Of a stretch of 64,000 bases of DNA, positions 12,901 through 34,575 are shown piece after piece. Where the stretch lies: the NCBI GenBank assembly GCA_024704765.1, contig JAKMXF010000177.1, forward strand, positions 62,001 through 126,000. The letters run 5' to 3'. This DNA comes from Oopsacas minuta. Its lineage: Eukaryota; Animalia; Porifera. The position numbers and the translations under genes were made by a program. The notes beneath the pieces were generated by a model that saw nothing but the letters and a program-made list of their open reading frames with translations, was not told where the DNA came from and did not search any database. Each line of letters opens with the position of its first letter. The first letter of the stretch is position 1.

Positions 12901-15392
12901 TGACCTGATTTATTTCTTACTATGTCCTCGGACTCCAGAGGTTATTTTATGCTCCAATGATCTTAGGGATGTGAAGTTATAAATGATTTTGAACAGCTCT
13001 AAATAGTGAAAACTAATGCTTTTACCCATCTATATACATCGATCATTTAATTAGAAAACACCTCTAAATAGTGAACCGAAGGTGTTCATTATAGAGAAGT
13101 TGTATTTACATTTTCTGAGATGTGAATTTATACGACATCCTTAAAATATCCACTGTCGGGTTCCCACACAATTTATCACAGTACAATTCAGATACAATAC
13201 CAGATGTGCAATTAACCTCATAGAAGATTAACTTGATTTGAACTTATCGACTCATTACAATTCAAGATACCTGATGTGTACTACTTTTGTTGGTGTTTAA
13301 TGTGTTGTTTTGTGCTTGTCAAATCACAGATTTATTCTTGAGTTACTTTGGAATTGTTAAATAACATATTCACCGATTTGACATAGTGAATACGTCAAAT
13401 TGCTATTTACCCTGTATTACATTCTAGTTATACATTAGTTTGCGGTATTGATATAAAATAGATTCAGAGACGCAAAAACAATCTTATAACTTGTTAAATT
13501 ATCACCATGGATGTGTTCGCAGATGAAATTATTACTGGCCCAAAGTGATTAAACCTAACCATAATTATATCTATGACTGACCCATAGTTGTTATATTCAA
13601 TATTCAACATATTAACACATTATAGTCAAACCGGATCTTATAACTTCACTGTATTGACACACTACTATGCAAACATTTGGTTATTTTTCACTAATTCAAT
13701 ACACGAACATTTTACTATTTCTTCATTGAAACCTTATCGGAAGAAGGTGACCTGTGTGGTTCCAGGGTGTAAATCAATTTAGATAGCCAACCAAATCGTA
13801 CAACCTCATTTTCATTTCATAAAGAGAAGGATTTCGCGCCATGTGGTTTAAGACTATTCCAAGACCGCAAGAACACTACGAGGAAAACAAGTCCTTACAG
13901 GTATGCAAATTACACAAATTTTACTCAGTTTGTAATTCCTTTTATTCAATTACTTCTACATTTTAAGTATATATCCTCCACTTCAACGATGAAGATACTG
14001 GGAAGAATTTTGAATATTTTGATGGTGAAAGGACAGTCTTGATACCCCGAGAAAGGATAAGATTAAAGAAAATGGTGGTATCAAGTATCTTTTCTAATTG
14101 CCCAAGCTATTTAACAGACACGACAGAAAAGCATACAAGACTATCAAGAGACTAAAAAGACGAGATAATACTTCAAGTAGCTTTCAGGATGAGCCGAACA
14201 TATAACAAGACTAAATTAAATTCGTAGTTTATTCATAGCTGATTTGTTAACTATTTTAGACTTAATTGACCTAGAAAACGGTTGGGTTACGTACAATCTA
14301 GGAACTGAGTTGTTTTACTTCCTGAAAATAGTAAATTGGATAACGTACCATCCGTTGAACGAAACCTCACTATTGATTTTGATGAAATACTCAAGGACTC
14401 ATGAGAAAACATGAAATCCAATTGTTAGTAAGGAAGATACATGATATCCGTCAAATTGAAACGATTATGAGTGAAATTTATTGTTATTATACCACAAAGT
14501 TCTACCGCCATCAATATTCCAATAAATAATAATATAGAATGTACAATTAATGAAATCGACTGCTCAATTACTAAATTAGATCTACATGAAAATAGCGATT
14601 TTGATATAGAAAACTCCAGTTCAACGAGAATTAGACTCAATTTCCTTGTAGATCAATTGAGATATTTAATCACTGAAAAACATCCAAGGCACTATACTGG
14701 CTATAATATTCTTTCACAAGTATTTGCATTGGAAGTATATGGAATATCACCTGCTTGTTATCGACTCATTCAGTCTTCGAATTGCTTAATTTTCCCCACG
14801 AGAGGTATATTTTAAAATTAAAAAATTCTATTAGCTTAGAAAATGAATACTTAAACGTTCTCAAGGAAACTGCGTTAACATTATGTCTAATAGATCGTCA
14901 CGTAATTATTCAAGTGGATGAAGTGGATATCCGTTGTGATGCTATTTACAAAGTGAGTAAAATTGTCAGATCTATTGAAAACCCTGAAGATCCTCCGACC
15001 ACTGTTTTTCTGTAACGGTATCAAGATTGGCGATAGCATATTCAACCATTGTCCATTTGATAACGCTTGGCTCATCGTCAGGAAAGATCTTTTTCCCCAT
15101 TATCAGAAAATGACTTTAGATATTGAGAGTTGTAATCTGTTTGTTGAAGCGATTTGTACTGATAACTATCCTCTAAATGCTAGTTTATTTAAGGAGTCTT
15201 GCCGCGAACTTTGTATTACGGTATGGGCTATTTTCTAAAGTATATGCTATTCTACTTCCTTAATGTATTCCAGTTCGTTGGACTTGCCAAACTAAGAGAT
15301 AATAATCATAAACCCCGATGTATCTAGTGTGTATTACGAATTGGGCATGAAAAGGTGGCAAAAGTCCTCCCATATGCGTAACATTAAAGTTC

Positions 15393-15719
15393 GGGACATA
15401 TTTTCTAATGTTTTTTGAAGAAGGACTATTGCCTAAGACCTATAAATTGTTATATATGCTTACCATATGTAGTTCTAATTTCTGGACCACAATTAGGCCC
15501 GAGTACCGCTCCAATAAGAAGATATTAACGGTTGAAGGGGGGTTTGGTAAAAATAGGCTAAAATCGGAGTCCGCAGGACTTAGGGTGGGATATCATGAAA
15601 ATTATTCGTTTATTCATTCTAAATGTGGTCCAGATTTCAGATAACATTGTATAAATGCTTCCCCAAAATTTCAGAGCATAAGAATTAGTCTTTCTTCAAA
15701 AAATAATAGACTATGTGGC
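15393..15719. repeat. Degenerate foldback MITE
   Basis: Imperfect inverted arms (TTTTTTGAAGAAGGACTA / TAGTCTTTCTTCAAAAAA; CTGGACCACAATTAG / CTAAATGTGGTCCAG). Confidence 0.45.
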
Positions 15720-15790
15720 GAAAAACATAGTTTTGAGATAATTGAAGTTAATGATTCATAAAATATATTTTTTGAATATATACATATTAT

Positions 15791-15851
15791 AGTGGTGTTT
15801 CGTCCCGCTAGGACTCATCAGTTAAGCTATGCCTTGTCTTAAGACAACACT
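15791..15851 (-). ncRNA. Type III hammerhead ribozyme
   Basis: Minus strand: AGTGTTGTC^TTAAG-ACAAGGCATAG-CTTAA-CTGATGA-GTCC-TAGCG-GGAC-GAA-ACACCACT. Full CUGAUGA/GAAA core, GUC cleavage triplet, 5-bp stem I, 4-bp stem II, 8-bp stem III with one mismatch. Confidence 0.88.
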
Positions 15852-16217
15852 TTCTTTTAACTGTTAACAAACAATAAAAAATAAGTCAAAAGGTGTGACA
15901 ATTTAACTCAAGACTGGGGTACAGCATGGAGATTATCAAGTGATCAATCAAGCCCACTGTCCAGTTCTGTACATCTCTGATAGAAATGTCAAAAGGAGCA
16001 AATAAATATTGTATAAGACTAAGTATAGAAGTGTAAAAGATATTATTAGAGCTAAAAATACATTCACTATTGTATCTAAGCAAAGCTATAACATGGTGTT
16101 TATACTACCCAAGTAGTAGAAATTACGTAAATACGAGTATGCACATACTCTGTTATGCATATTCTCTAAGAAAGTATCATATAAATTGCATTGTATATAG
16201 CAATAGCATAACGAGTA

Positions 16218-16590
16218 ATGTCACAAATTCAAGAACTCAAAAATTTTATTTCTATCGCTCAGCACCCCCAGAATCGGGAGGCCTTAATCAAGATTCTCGG
16301 AGACGTGAAAAGGGAGAAACATGAACGTGAGCAGGTCGCTCGCGTCTTTGCAAAATGGAAACGTTTTGCAAGGGGGCGACGATCGCGACGTTCAATGCGG
16401 CCCATTCCACGTGCTAAGAGGGTCAAGGCCAATGATCTACGTATACAGTGGGCATTATTTTGGTGGAGTTCTTCCGCCCAATGTCAATCTGATGCGTATG
16501 CATTGCGAACTTTCCGTGAGGAAAGTGACCGACGCAGGTTCTGGGAGGCTTCGTAGCGAGCTGGCTTTTTTTAAAGCCCGCAGGAAATGA
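16218..16590 (+). other. GC/CpG-rich island with two overlapping ORFs of unknown function
   Basis: ORFs 16218-16556 and 16321-16590 overlap around a G-run (GCAAGGGGGCGAC). Composition is visibly different from the flanks. No domain recognised. Confidence 0.25.
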
Positions 16591-16992
16591 TGAATCTGAT
16601 CCTGCGTCATTTTTACACAAAAGAGTAAATGCATGAATTAATAATAACTTGGGATCAAATATATAATTTTTGAAAAAATGACTATTTTTGGAAGATGACG
16701 TCACAAATTGTATATAACTCACACTAGAATACTCGGATTTGAAAAATTTCAATGTAGGAATGATAATAATACATGTGAGTATGTTTCCAAATAATAAACT
16801 CAATAAAACAAATTTGCCTAATAAATGACCAAATTTCGCGGCAAGACACCTTAAATTATTCTCAAACGACTCGCAAACTTTGCAATCCAAAGTAAAACAT
16901 CCTTGTGACCCTTTGAGATACCTAATACTACGAGCCTTTGGCACATCGCTTCGCGATAAACTCAGCGCATTGCGCCTCAAGGTATTCAAATG

Positions 16993-17397
16993 ACAAACAA
17001 ACAGTCAAACAACAATTGAGATTTAATGATATATTGATTTGTTTACAATACCATATTCGAACTCAGCTTACTTGATTACCTCAGTAATGTCGTTCTAAGT
17101 ATGATTCTACATCAATTTTGAAATTTGTTTACTTTGTATTCATATAAACAATAATAAATTTACATATGATTAATCCAAAAGTGTGAAAATCGGATTCAGC
17201 ATGTTCGATATATTTGGTGAAATTTAATTGAATTCTATTTAATTCCTTGATAAACACGATAAATACATAGTTATGAGACAATTTCGAAATTGCATACCGC
17301 AAATCAGTTCCTTAACAACGGACAAACAAACAGACAAACAAACAAACAGACAGACAAACAAACAAATAGACAACAATTGAGATTTAATAATATAGAT
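16993..17397 (-). mobile_element. Helitron/Helentron-like non-autonomous repeat end with (AAAC/AGAC)n microsatellite
   Basis: Same modules and terminal CAATTGAGATTTAATAATATAGAT as 3829-5415. Confidence 0.5.
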
Positions 17398-19060: not shown

Positions 19061-21393
19061 CAGTATGTCCTCTCTAATAGTCCACCTACTGGCAACGGTA
19101 GTTGAGGTGGACTATTACAGGTATTGGACTATTAGAGTTTAACATGTGTAAATACCGAAATTAATGTGCAGTATATACATATTTATACATCACATGAAGT
19201 GTCCAATTGTGGAACAAAATACTCCCTAAGGACAGTTTGCTTTGAGTTTAGGTCCTTTTTCTCAGCTTTCAAGTCTAGGCATTTGCGATACACCCTTGTG
19301 AGCATATAAGTAGCTTCATCTTCATCTAATGATGACATTATTTGTATAACCTTCTCAACCATTTCAATGCCTTCAGTAATGTTCACACTATTGAGAGCTT
19401 CCATTCGAGTAAGAGGTTGTACTTCAGAATCCGAATCATCATCTGCACTTAATGGATCTGGCGGTATGTCCACGCTACTAGGATCTATCTCCATTGAAGT
19501 TTCAGTTGCACCATCGTTTCCTGCAGTGGGTTGCACATCTTCTCGTTCAAGTGCCATTTGAACTTCATCTTGTTTAACAAGATCACCATCTTCGATATCA
19601 AACCAGTCATTTAGTACATCAACGAGACCTGCAGGATCATTTTTAGCTTGCCATTGAAGAGCAACAAACTCTCCAATGAAATGCTCTCTCCCTATTGCAG
19701 GAGGAGGTTGATCATTGTCATCCTGGCTCGAGGGTTGACTGCTGATAGTTGCATGCTGCAACAAACTACTTAACTCTTCAACAGCTGGCAGACTCAATGG
19801 TCGACGATAAGTCTCAAGACCCTCTACATGACATGTAGGCAGAATGTCTGCTTTCAACCAGCAATTTAGTAGAGTTGACTGGTTCATTGATTCCCACACC
19901 TCGTGCGCTATTGTTGCAGCATCTAAGAGGTTCGGTGGGTAAGCATGATTTAGCCCTCTAACTCCTGCTGTAATGGAGGCTCCAATTGCTCGCAATTCAT
20001 CATACCTTTCAAGGTTTTTAACCATTGAATGTAGCATGTTGGACTTGTACTTCCTCTTAAGTGCAGCGATAATGCCCTGATCCATAGGTTGATGGACTGA
20101 TGTACAGTTTGGTGGTAGCAAAACCCACTTGACCTGTGGGTCTTGAAGAGCAGCATCAGTTTCATCATGGGAACCAAAGTTGTCAGCTATCAGAATGACT
20201 GGTCTGGATGTCCTCTTTCGAATTGCTGGCAGAAAGACATCATGGAACCACCATTTAGTCAGTACATGATCATTCCATGCATTCTTCTGCGAGTTGTATG
20301 GCAAAGGAGATGGACATGTTCGAAAGCAACGAGGCTGGGCTGCCTTCCCAATCATAGCAAGAGGAATCTTGTGTGTGCCTATTGCATTAGTGCACGTGAT
20401 AAGGGTGACACGATCCTTTGCTTTTTGAGCTTTAGTTCCCCGTGTACGTCGTCGCTGTTCATTTGGTGCAGTATACGTTGCACTAGGAATCAATCTAAAG
20501 TACAAGCCAGTTTCATCCCAGTTGTATATAAGCTCTGGGTCATACTCCTCTAGCATTTTTTTAATTTCCTGGATCCTCTCTTTAATATCTTTTGGGTTTA
20601 CGTCGCCTATGCAGGCGAACACTCTTTCCTATGCTGTTTCTTTTCATCAGCTTTTGCCACCAACCATTTGATGCTTTAAACTCATGTTCACCAAGGGATT
20701 TGGCCACTTGTTCAGCATACACCTTTATAATACTCAAAGAAATAGGCATAGGTTTGCGTCTGTTACGAAGAAGAGAAACAAATGCTACTACTTTTTCTTC
20801 TATAGCCCTATACTTGATCTCACGATTACGTCGAAGATCACCAGATGTCGTAAGAAGTTGTTGCTTGAGCTTCTTTGCACTCCACAAAACTCGGTTTATC
20901 GTCTTTACAGTGACATTATGCTGTTTTGCAAGCATAGTCTGGTTAACTCGGACCAAGGTGGATTCTACAGAGTTGGGTTGAAAGCCACTTTTTAGTGCTT
21001 GATCAATCACATCACATTTCTGCTTCAGTGTAAGCTCAACCCTTTGCTTCTTTGCAGCAAGCTGAGCTGTGGTGTATTTCTTGCCTTTTCTTGTTGAAGC
21101 ACCTCTTAGGTGAATAGGTTGCTTTCGACCAGGAGCCATTGCTAAAAAACTGAGCTAGAAAACTGAGCTAGAACTAAAACAGGCTAGCAGCTGTCAGCAG
21201 TGCAGGTTTTAACAAGCAGCTGCCAGATTCTAAATAGTGCCTGTTTTAACAAGCAGCTGCCAGCACTGCAGTGCACTCTGTACACTTATGTAACATTGTT
21301 TACACCTACAAATACAAATGGGTTTTGGGTATCTGCTAGACTATTAGGGGATTTGGACTATAAGGGAGGTGGACTATTAGAGAGGACATACTG
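19061..21393 (-). mobile_element. Complete Tigger/pogo DNA transposon
   Basis: Perfect 27-bp TIRs CAGTATGTCCTCTCTAATAGTCCACCT with a TA TSD on both sides. Subterminal GGACTATTA repeats. Confidence 0.95.
19183..21139 (-). pseudogene. Tigger/pogo transposase (CENP-B-like HTH + DDE_1) with a single frameshift at ~20610
   Basis: ORF 20582-21139 has HTH_psq-like and HTH_Tnp_Tc5 motifs (FKASNGWWQK). ORF 19183-20622 has NWDETG, ADNFGSH and QPMDQG. The junction reads ...VRLH|AGGCGAC where HGEAGD is expected. Confidence 0.9.
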
Positions 21394-31742: not shown

Positions 31743-34575
31743 CACGGGTCTCTCAGAAAATCATATTGATCGAAAAAACGAGGTCCTTGAGATTTTTCAT
31801 GATTCTTGTGTAGAATTTTGCGTAGAATCCGATTCTGTTGCCAAAAAAATATTTCTCACACAAATTTTTGAGTTATTTTATATTTTTTTGTAAAAAAAAA
31901 ATTTTTTAGTTCCCATTTTATATGTTGTCGGGTTGCTAATTTATCATATTAGAATCATCGTTATCACTCATACATTGAATATAATACATCCATCAGTCAC
32001 ATATAGAATAAATTAAGTACTTATAAAATTAACGAAATTAATTTCCTTGACAGCATTTAGTAGGTTTTCGCCGTAATTTTCTAGAGACTCGCTACATTGA
32101 TAATTTCTCCAAACTTTGATGAATCGAGAATGAGCTGATTCAGCTGCCTGCTCTGAAACGGCGCCCAATCCCATACCAACTGGAAGGAATTTGGTGATAA
32201 ATGGGATAACATGTCTGCACACTATATGGACTTTTGTTGAACAATTCAGCCCAGTTAATTTGAATGCTTCTTCAAATTGAAATATCGCCAGTTTGTAATC
32301 ACCTTGTATCTTTTGCCCAAAACATGTCCTCACTACCTCTGAAAATCGCTTTAAAGCAATGCTGGATGAGTTGCTAATTGGAAAACCAATCTGCTCAACC
32401 ATCAATGTAATTTTCCGCATTGCATTACCTTCAAATGCGCCTCCATGATAAGAACTTCGAGATATGTTATTGTGCTTCAGTAATAATTCATGTGTAACTA
32501 ACTCTTCTTCAGACATTGTAGCCACGATCGCATTGTACAACTTCTGACCAACCCCTAACAAAAGATGTAACTCGGGAATATTGAACATCTGCATGTAGTC
32601 AACCATCCATACACCAAGAGCCTCCATATCTTCTACACCATCACAGTCAATCGCATGATTCTTTGAGTCGGAGTTATATTCTTCACACAATTTTTGGTAC
32701 ATCTCTGCATGATGTGCTGATGATCTTGATTTGAATTCGACATGATCCAATCCACTTTTAGCATCCCATACACACCAAATGCATGGGTAACGTCCAAGCA
32801 TAATACCCAGACAGAGAGCAGCGGCTTTGAGATCAAAGGTAAAAGATACGTTGTACTCATGAATAAACTTTTGAATTTCCGGGGCATTCAGTATTATAGA
32901 AAAATTGTAATTATTTTCAGGAGCACTTGATACCCATAAGAAGATTAGATTTCGCACAGAATTTTCCAGTTGTAGACACATGACAAGCTTAGTGAACCCA
33001 CAACCATAATCAAGGCCAAGCTTAAAATTGAAACTGTAAACTGAAGATTCTCCGCTAATGTTGTAGACTTTTTCTATCAGTTTGTCGATGTTGCAACAGC
33101 GTACGACCCAAGTCTTTCTGATATCAGAGGAATACTTCTCTTTGCTCCATTCCAGATCTAATTGGACGCATTCGAATATATCATCACAATATTGTTTCCG
33201 TTCGTCGTAATAGTCCTTCATTGATGGACAGGCCACGCCAGCATCCCTTATTACTTTGGTTACAGCTTTTAGTTGCTTGTTACTCATTGCTCCGCCAGTG
33301 CATTTTATCTGTGCGATGTCAGAGAAATCCATTTTGGGCATTTTGTGTTGAGGTAACTGGTCCAAATTACCAGGAAGCATATGAATTGGATGGCCTCCCG
33401 ATGGTCTAGGTAACGTTATACGCGAGTCCTCACTTGCACTGCGGAATTTTCGTAAGATTTCGGAACATACGACAGGTTCAATAGAACGTTTTCGTGCTAA
33501 CAAAAATTGGCTATTATTTACCAAAGAAGTTTTTGAGCAAGTATGCGGAAATCCGGGACTTATTGTGTTTAAACACTTACTACAAAGGTTAAGAACCTTT
33601 TTGGGAGAGTTGATCGCAGGACGTCCAGGTTTTTCGTGGAGAATTTGCAAAGAAGCACGATTTCTAGGTCCAAATCTCGAACTTTCCATGCACATTACAC
33701 AGGTATTGACTGAACTACACGTATTCAAGCGAGTATTTCGTATAATTGGCCAATTGAATCGAACAGGAATTTCCCTTGAAGTATCATCATGCATTAATCG
33801 ATTAACCAAATAGAGCTTGCAAGTATTGCACAAAACATTTGGCCGATTATCGTCCATCGGATCGATTGGCTCGAAAAACTTCGAATATTGCTCACCCAAA
33901 TGAGTAGAAATAAGGCTATTGTTTTTAATAGTTATCTTCCCAACTTTAATACAACACCAACGACAAATTTTGTCTTTTGCAGACTCGTGCTTACTCATAA
34001 ATACCAACAGTAGAAATAGATATCAGAACAATTATGTATCAGAAAAATTATATAGAAAATGAGTACAAGCATTCTTTAAATAGTTTTTCTATGCAAACAG
34101 ATATTCGTTAAACACCTTTAATTACTAATTATCACTGAATGGAAACTACTTAAAAGTATTCAAAGGACTCGATTAGGTGATTAATGACGTGCAATCAAAC
34201 TATTGTTACTATTGTTAAACTATTCGAACCTGATACCATACAGAAAAATGAATGACATAATAGAATAGAATAAAACCGCAATACTATTGAAAATTCTAAG
34301 TGCATGCAGATGTAAACAACAATGTCTAAGCATATCATAATAATATCTGATTGCCAATGGTGATGCATCTGCCATCGCTGTCATGATGAGAATCTAAAAT
34401 ATTCGAATTGTAAAAAATTATTTTTTTACAAAAAAATAAATTTATCGAAAAAATTTGCGTGGGAAATATTTTTTTGACAACAGAATCGGATTCTACGCAA
34501 AATTCTACACAAGAATCATGAAAAATCTCAAGGACCTCGTTTTTTCGATCAATATGATTTTCTGAGAGACCCATG
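31743..34575 (-). mobile_element. Complete Chapaev-type (CMC superfamily, RAG1/Transib-related) DNA transposon
   Basis: ~160-bp TIRs (31743-~31908, ~34410-34575) starting CACGGGTCTCTCAG / CATGGGTCTCTCAG. 4-bp flanks TGGT (31739-31742) and CGGT (34576-34579). One long internal ORF. Confidence 0.88.
32013..34007 (-). CDS. Intact Chapaev-type transposase (~661-664 aa; first ATG at 33998)
   Basis: N-terminal Chapa-like Cys/His domain (H-x7-CRWC, PNVLCNTC, W...C...CVMC). Core motifs: KLGLDYG (D), TFDLK (D), YPCIWC, ELHLLLG, KVHIVCRHV and GAVSEQAAES (E), collinear with the RAG1/Transib core. No stops. Confidence 0.85.
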   Translation of the reverse strand: MVFMSKHESAKDKICRWCCIKVGKITIKNNSLISTHLGEQYSKFFEPIDPMDDNRPNVLCNTCKLYLVNRLMHDDTSREIPVRFNWPIIRNTRLNTCSSVNTCVMCMESSRFGPRNRASLQILHEKPGRPAINSPKKVLNLCSKCLNTISPGFPHTCSKTSLVNNSQFLLARKRSIEPVVCSEILRKFRSASEDSRITLPRPSGGHPIHMLPGNLDQLPQHKMPKMDFSDIAQIKCTGGAMSNKQLKAVTKVIRDAGVACPSMKDYYDERKQYCDDIFECVQLDLEWSKEKYSSDIRKTWVVRCCNIDKLIEKVYNISGESSVYSFNFKLGLDYGCGFTKLVMCLQLENSVRNLIFLWVSSAPENNYNFSIILNAPEIQKFIHEYNVSFTFDLKAAALCLGIMLGRYPCIWCVWDAKSGLDHVEFKSRSSAHHAEMYQKLCEEYNSDSKNHAIDCDGVEDMEALGVWMVDYMQMFNIPELHLLLGVGQKLYNAIVATMSEEELVTHELLLKHNNISRSSYHGGAFEGNAMRKITLMVEQIGFPISNSSSIALKRFSEVVRTCFGQKIQGDYKLAIFQFEEAFKLTGLNCSTKVHIVCRHVIPFITKFLPVGMGLGAVSEQAAESAHSRFIKVWRNYQCSESLENYGENLLNAVKEINFVNFIST

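Follow-up and report, generated by a model that had tools for sequence, protein, structure and literature searches.

The window, that is, the whole 64-kb stretch of DNA analyzed here, comes from the genome of the glass sponge Oopsacas minuta and harbors, among its host genes, homologues of NRDE-2 and IFT80. On its minus strand lies a type III hammerhead motif that starts 1,004 nt into a 1,666-bp element bounded by inverted repeats and TTAA [Table 1]. Immediately to the right of this element is a ~420-bp repeat of very high copy number (1,440 candidates at first look), the scored copies of which are 83-91% identical and which probably represents a MITE- or SINE-like family. The window further holds a pogo/Tc5-like transposase, with its DDE_1 and HTH_Tnp_Tc5 domains in two adjacent ORFs, and a Chapaev element in which no hammerhead was found.

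Table 1 Features of the carrier element, its surroundings and related loci. Positions are those of the window unless a locus is named; q is the element coordinate (q = 16854 - window position + 1).
Feature	Position	Strand	Remarks
Type III hammerhead motif	15792..15850 (q1005-1063)	minus	Core pattern and alignment to relatives
Non-autonomous Kolobok-like DNA transposon (assignment from ends and relatives)	15189..16854	minus (ribozyme sense)	1,666 bp including flanking TTAA; boundaries shared among copies
3′ terminal inverted repeat (ribozyme sense), TTAAGGAGTCTTGCCGCGAACTTTG	15189..15213		Starts with TTAA (15189-15192); 23/25 match to the reverse complement of 16830-16854
5′ terminal inverted repeat (ribozyme sense)	16830..16854		Ends with TTAA (16851-16854); terminal pattern
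3′ module common to transposase-bearing relatives	15189..15951 (q904-1666)	minus	Would correspond to the 3′ UTR and 3′ end of the autonomous form
Apparent transposase coding-end remnant (PHD-like finger)	15948..15985	minus	82% identity over 38 nt to L031:1222-1259
Filler or captured DNA	16045..16593 (q262-810)	.	67-73% identical to loci beside a multi-copy P-loop gene
112-aa basic ORF	16218-16556	plus	Inside the filler, antisense to the ribozyme
5′ subterminal region	16665..16829 (q26-190)	minus	Kept in long and short non-autonomous forms
Palindrome across the cleavage site	15837-15850	minus	14 nt
Very high-copy repeat	16925-17354		Right of the element
pogo/Tc5-like transposase	19183-21139	minus	Two adjacent ORFs
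Chapaev element	31743-34575
Domain of ~150 nt upstream of other hammerheads	L034:1319-1470	plus	Same in L032, L033, L035, L037, L038 and L041-L046
Hammerhead of the most abundant group	G000:C177:182961-183019	minus	Same contig, ~57 kb past the window end
PF20700 frame of 865 aa	C338:208747-209697	minus	Intact, without stop codons

Read along the minus strand from 15850 to 15792, the motif consists of GUGUUGUC / UUAAG-ACAAGGCAUAG-CUUAA / CUGAUGA / GUCC-UAGCG-GGAC / GAAA / CACCAC. Its core is complete (CUGAUGA, GAAA and GUC, with C17 at 15843), and all of the residues by which hammerheads are recognized are in place, namely C3-U4-G5-A6-N7-G8-A9, G12-A13-A14, the A15.1-U16.1 pair, an H17 other than G, and the G10.1-C11.1 pair that closes stem II. 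Stem I comprises 5 bp and an 11-nt loop, and stem II 4 bp and a 5-nt loop; as helices I and II both end in loops and stem III is open, the topology is that of a type III ribozyme, for which cleavage is predicted between 15843 and 15842 of the minus strand (q1012/1013). The core pattern CTGANGAGN{8,20}CGAAA matched once in the 64-kb window, against 0.02 matches expected from shuffles, and a model search likewise returned one copy. These results bear out a sequence-only reading of the same DNA, which had described a complete minus-strand core with a G-C pair closing stem II, type III topology with an 11-nt stem I loop, this cleavage site, a single copy in the window and a probably animal genome as the host. 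The word "intact", which that reading had also used, is appropriate for the catalytic core but not for the molecule as a whole: helix III of the window copy carries a C·U mismatch at 15.4/16.4 (minus-strand U at 15847), and the minimum-free-energy fold is not the hammerhead.

An Rfam scan of the window yielded no match at the gathering score, the window copy remaining below the 48.5-bit threshold of RF00008, and in E-value mode the sole match to the motif was a partial Hammerhead_1 alignment of 16.8 bits. The missing call was considered as evidence against the motif and set aside, since the C296 sibling aligns end to end with Hammerhead_3 (36.9 bits, E 5e-5, the best member of the family, all matches of which lie below the 48.5-bit gathering score). 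The type III hammerhead motif in the window is confirmed as real.

Anatomy and copies of the carrier element

The element has TTAAGGAGTCTTGCCGCGAACTTTG at one end and the reverse complement of TTAAGGTGTCTTGCCGCGAAATTTG at the other, these 25-bp terminal inverted repeats being identical at 23 positions. Inside the TTAA, the termini read GGAGTC...GACACC, that is GG..CC, and so conform to 5′-RR..YY-3′. A search with the terminal inverted-repeat pattern gave 24 matches in the genome and none in the control. The boundaries of the element are sharp and common to at least 14 copies with unrelated flanks, and every complete copy has TTAA at both ends. A 351-bp probe around the motif found 32 matching places in the 61.46-Mb, 365-contig assembly, and a search with the whole element found 49, at least five of them near-full copies at 94-97% identity and many of them fragments. 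The copies are dispersed singly, with no tandem arrays in the whole-element search. No ORF longer than 112 aa was found inside the element, nor were direct terminal repeats (LTRs) when these were looked for, and the element contains one hammerhead, as does the window as a whole. A search of the genome with the joined flanks of the element, for an empty site that would prove duplication of TTAA, gave no match, no clean empty site being available because the left flank has paralogues at 65-73% and the right flank is the high-copy repeat. Thus, the motif is not the orphan that the sequence-only reading had considered, and neither the tandem or LTR-like pairs nor the Penelope terminal repeat that it had envisaged were encountered in or around this inverted-repeat element. 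Its mention of heavily decayed transposable-element debris fits the repeat-rich neighborhood but not the motif's immediate surroundings, which are a well-delimited element closely similar to its siblings.

Between its ends the element appears to be composite. The apparent coding-end remnant is joined to the 3′ UTR by a ~139-bp deletion relative to the C296 copy. A short subfamily of the element is devoid of q190-934, and hence of the filler, and matches to q1-190 and q934-1666 are accordingly paired at C8, C332, C315, C304 and C146. The 112-aa ORF inside the filler shares 55% protein identity with L059:6393-6857 (minus strand) and, judged from its sequence, looks like host DNA captured by the transposon. 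The L059 ORF lies next to a multi-copy 438-aa P-loop gene, GIMAP-like by eye; L057:3766-5082 (minus strand) belongs to the same set of loci. The filler was also followed as a possible path to the transposase; it led to the neighborhood of this P-loop gene and was treated as captured DNA. Three additional sites recovered from the genome with the inverted-repeat pattern (L051, L053 and L055) were rejected as autonomous parents in that they have only ~50 bp of terminus in common with the element and hold host genes or a pogo-like DDE_1.

In three independent copies (G000:C146, C304 and C8), foreign DNA of 0.9-2 kb interrupts the stretch TATAATAT shortly past the ribozyme, at q1075-1082 (window ~15773-15780). 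In the C146 and C8 copies q1075-1081/1082 is duplicated on both sides of the break, and the break in C304 lies slightly upstream, at q1069/1070. The site resembles a preferred target for insertion of another transposon.

Transposase-bearing relatives

Similarity between the 3′ module of the window element and the C296, C9, C332, C244, C151 and C105 copies begins at q904. In the C296 copy, this point lies ~105 nt after a transposase stop codon: upstream of the ribozyme and on its strand come first an ORF matching PF20700 ("Mutator-like transposase", E 3e-18) and then one encoding a PHD-like finger. Homologous C-terminal coding pieces were found directly upstream of the 3′ module at C105, C244, C151 and C199, such that in five diverged relatives the module follows the end of a PHD-finger transposase on the same strand. 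The gap between the stop codon and the ribozyme, located with the model built from the genome's hammerheads, amounts to ~200-211 nt at C296, C244, C151 and C199; at C105 the ribozyme is cut off. The proteins of these relatives, as read from partial and broken ORFs, consist of a PF20700 domain and a PHD-like tail, and although they are only 56-73% identical, the position and strand of the ribozyme after the stop codon are kept. An ORF from a sister locus is 100% identical to the NCBI hypothetical protein LOD99_3993 [Oopsacas minuta]. Because the same module follows the transposase end at a fixed spacing and on the same strand, the hammerhead is best understood as a native 3′-UTR feature of the transposase gene.

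An intact autonomous copy combining the ribozyme and both ends was not seen in the genome, the C296 copy having frameshifts and a truncated 3′ repeat. C338 carries an intact 865-aa PF20700 frame which, from its sequence, may belong to an intact autonomous element; neither the hammerhead pattern nor the genome model detected a ribozyme downstream of it. Several copies of the window's element are located within ~30 kb of this frame. More diverged transposase relatives at C99, C31 and C44 gave no ribozyme match, and at ten metagenome loci with transposase relatives (36-52% identical, on short contigs) no hammerhead was found with the genome-derived model or Rfam, a negative result of little weight given the short contigs and the low identity.

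Kolobok transposons have TTAA-specific ends and 5′-RR..YY-3′ termini, those of piggyBac being CCC..GGG; they are known from sponges and their DDE transposase is related to those of MuDR, hAT and P [PMC9587614]. The window element resembles Kolobok in both its TTAA ends and its 5′-RR..YY-3′ termini. A piggyBac carrier was considered and rejected, the termini being GG..CC rather than CCC..GGG and the linked transposase matching PF20700 rather than PF13843. The carrier would accordingly be of the Kolobok type, an assignment based on its ends and on the match of its relatives to a Pfam model with the name "Mutator". Its inverted repeats, TTAA/GG..CC ends, single ribozyme and DDE-transposase relatives make the element a non-autonomous, internally deleted cut-and-paste DNA transposon with acquired filler.

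Our preferred reading, to which we assign a probability of about three in four, is that the hammerhead of the window is a passenger in a non-autonomous Kolobok-type transposon, the autonomous form of which has the ribozyme in the 3′ UTR of its transposase gene. In such an autonomous form, ~200-211 nt would separate the ribozyme from the upstream stop codon of a Mutator/Kolobok-like DDE transposase whose C-terminus is PHD-like, and the 3′ inverted repeat would lie ~600 nt downstream of the ribozyme start. Upon transcription of the element, the ribozyme would cut after C17, ~210 nt past the stop codon, and would release the UTR lying further downstream, together with the 3′ inverted repeat and any read-through, from the coding portion. 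The effect would most likely be control of the 3′ end or of the level of the transposase mRNA, as the Clec2 3′-UTR hammerhead and engineered 3′-UTR ribozymes suggest by analogy; another possibility is that cutting prevents pairing between the two inverted repeats of a single transcript. Non-autonomous copies need no more than their ends for DNA transposition, and the ribozyme is therefore free to decay in them.

Hammerheads across the genome and their conservation

The tight core pattern gave 50 matches in the genome and none in the reversed control, and a covariance model built from the genome's hammerheads gave at least 113 type III matches. The related hammerheads of the genome make up at least four sequence groups with compensatory changes in their stems. 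Groups A (the window's family) to D are alike in architecture, in that stem I has 5 bp and a loop of 10-11 nt in which AAGG occurs, and stem II has 4 bp. The most abundant group, with the core CTGACGAGTCTACGCCG[A/T]GACGAAA, has ~25 copies in the genome, one of them on the same contig as the window [Table 1].

Groups B, C and D have the core and stem architecture of the window's family, with compensatory differences, but they are set apart from it by the differently flanked elements in which they reside and by a GC-rich domain of ~150 nt just upstream of the hammerhead. This domain is 80-90% identical among the three groups, the other flanks of which differ; it matched no Rfam family, and nhmmer did not find it in group A. 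The carriers of groups B, C and D are characterized only in part, and where an upstream ORF survives in them the ribozyme is on its strand. A group B ribozyme is preceded by an ORF with an OTU domain, a finding compatible with Ginger1 [PMC2836005], and a group C ribozyme by an ORF with a weak RAG1-like match. The Chapaev protein of the window was compared with the latter ORF as a possible relative and proved to be unrelated. The recurrence of one hammerhead architecture in at least four groups with otherwise dissimilar flanks, the upstream domain common to three of them and the diversity of the preceding ORFs could all be accommodated by a mobile ribozyme cassette that recombines between unrelated transposons, for its own spread or for a host function, with Kolobok as one of its vehicles. 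We consider this unlikely in that group A is devoid of the upstream domain and its ribozyme sits in a UTR that is collinear across diverged members, a situation that fits long vertical residence better than recent capture.

Fifteen hammerheads from four sequence groups were aligned for covariation. The core is invariant in all 15, 86% of the cells are paired, compared to 26-45% with slid partners, and 8 of the 16 stem pairs vary on both sides. The three-way junction of type III is thus supported by covariation, the window copy having one helix III mismatch. Across the family of the window element, ribozyme columns deviate from the family majority at 7.3% of sites, compared to 16.3% in the flanking UTR (Fisher p 6e-17), a divergence 2.2-fold below that of the flanks; within the young subfamily the corresponding figures are 2.3% and 3.9%, a difference that is non-significant (p 0.09). 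Individual copies have suffered core mutations, different in each (L006, L007, L008, L011, L012, L015, L017, L021, L024, L025 and L027). A ribozyme conserved in the family together with assorted core mutations in the copies fits selection on the source elements; the sequence pattern is what would be expected if selection acted on these and not on inserted copies.

The window copy belongs to a young long subfamily that has GUGUUGUC in common. Older and transposase-linked copies carry GUGGUGUC, which gives a perfect seven-pair helix III. The G-to-U change of the window's subfamily breaks the 15.4-16.4 pair of helix III and at the same time lengthens the palindrome UUGUCUUAAGACAA spanning the cleavage site. 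In the window, a perfect 14-nt palindrome, TTGTCTTAAGACAA, extends across this site; it contains TTAA, the target sequence of the carrier element itself. The hairpin formed by this palindrome competes with the hammerhead fold in the window's subfamily. In fold energies that take no account of tertiary loop contacts, the hammerhead fold of the window copy reaches -5.7 kcal/mol compared to -13.4 for its minimum-free-energy fold, and that of the C296 copy -10.4 compared to -14.9; in L032, of group C, the minimum-free-energy fold is the hammerhead. Owing to the derived C·U mismatch in helix III and to the competing hairpin, activity of the window copy is doubtful, and folding predictions suggest that it is probably a poor or dead ribozyme, a weakened relic. 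Less important in itself, this copy can serve, next to the better-preserved copies linked to a transposase, as a natural control for "relaxed selection".

The free decay of individual copies, the preference of the window copy for a non-hammerhead fold and the fact that every match falls below the Rfam threshold might suggest that the hammerhead-like sequence of a transposon UTR was a chance product that multiplied with the element without ever being functional. Such an origin appears quite improbable to us given the compensatory changes between groups around an invariant core, the retention of position and strand after the stop codon in copies that are as little as 56-73% identical in protein, the 2.2-fold lower divergence of the ribozyme relative to its flanks, and the 50 genome matches as opposed to none in the reversed control. 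The sequence-only reading had proposed an undescribed retrozyme-like or circular-RNA retroelement family, whose transcripts would be cut by hammerheads, circularized and copied back to DNA; a multi-copy mobile-element family it is, and plant LTR retrozymes are indeed defined by type III hammerheads [PMC6155905] and the window element is, like them, non-coding and repeated, but the single ribozyme per element, the lack of direct terminal repeats and tandem arrays, the inverted repeats with TTAA ends, a cleavage site (q1012/1013) that coincides with no copy boundary, and relatives encoding a DDE transposase and not a reverse transcriptase largely refute the retroelement and leave it with a very slim chance.

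For the preferred reading of a Kolobok-type passenger derived from a transposase 3′ UTR, what is established pertains to the family, namely how the element is built, its link to the transposase at a conserved spacing and on a conserved strand, the covariation of the stems, and a ribozyme that is better conserved than the remaining UTR. A broader proposal would be that type III hammerheads are a selected, functional 3′-UTR part of glass-sponge cut-and-paste transposons (Kolobok, probably Ginger-like elements, and others), where cleavage of the transposase transcript would define its 3′ end, set its level or detach it from the terminal repeats. We see the odds of this proposal as evenly balanced.

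Comparison with known systems

In the literature searched, type III hammerheads are described from viroid-like RNAs, plant retrozymes, HDV-like agents and Clec2, and type I hammerheads from animal satellites, Penelope-like elements and non-LTR retrozymes. Until now, eukaryotic hammerheads have been associated with retroelements, satellites, viroid-like RNAs and a small number of host genes, type III being considered typical of plants and viroids and type I of animals. The literature searched held no hammerhead in a DNA transposon and nothing on ribozymes of Oopsacas, and the Kolobok literature searched nowhere mentioned a ribozyme; relative to that literature, the pairing of a ribozyme with a DNA transposon is new. 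If the proposal is true, class II transposons would for the first time be known to employ a self-cleaving ribozyme, and a large natural set of animal type III hammerheads would come with them. A type III hammerhead at a constant distance from the transposase stop codon of a DNA transposon, together with more than 100 relatives in a single compact animal genome, extends the known niches of hammerheads to class II elements and gives an opportunity to test whether a transposon processes its own mRNA.

Of the systems known, plant LTR retrozymes resemble the window element in their type III topology, in which helices I and II end in loops, and in a carrier that is non-coding, repeated and non-autonomous. 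They are, in contrast, retroelements that pass through a circular RNA and carry a ribozyme in each of two direct repeats [PMC6155905], whereas the window element, with its single ribozyme, has inverted repeats and TTAA ends and is related to elements encoding a DDE transposase. Membership in the LTR retrozymes was rejected on these grounds, as direct terminal repeats are absent and both the element and the window contain a single hammerhead.

Penelope-like elements and animal non-LTR retrozymes provide a precedent for a hammerhead inside an animal mobile element. Their hammerheads are of type I and often dimers, and occur in pseudo-LTRs or tandem units of reverse-transcriptase elements; that of the window is of type III, single, and housed in a class II element. 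Membership in these groups was likewise rejected in view of the type III topology, the dispersed single copies and the linked pieces of a DDE transposase.

The mammalian Clec2 hammerhead resembles that of the Oopsacas family in being a type III motif located after the stop codon in the 3′ UTR of an mRNA, where a part in controlling the 3′ end or the polyadenylation site has been suggested for it [PMC6155905]. Clec2 is a host gene, however, and its hammerhead is discontinuous, with a very long insertion in helix I, whereas the Oopsacas motif is compact and belongs to a transposase gene.
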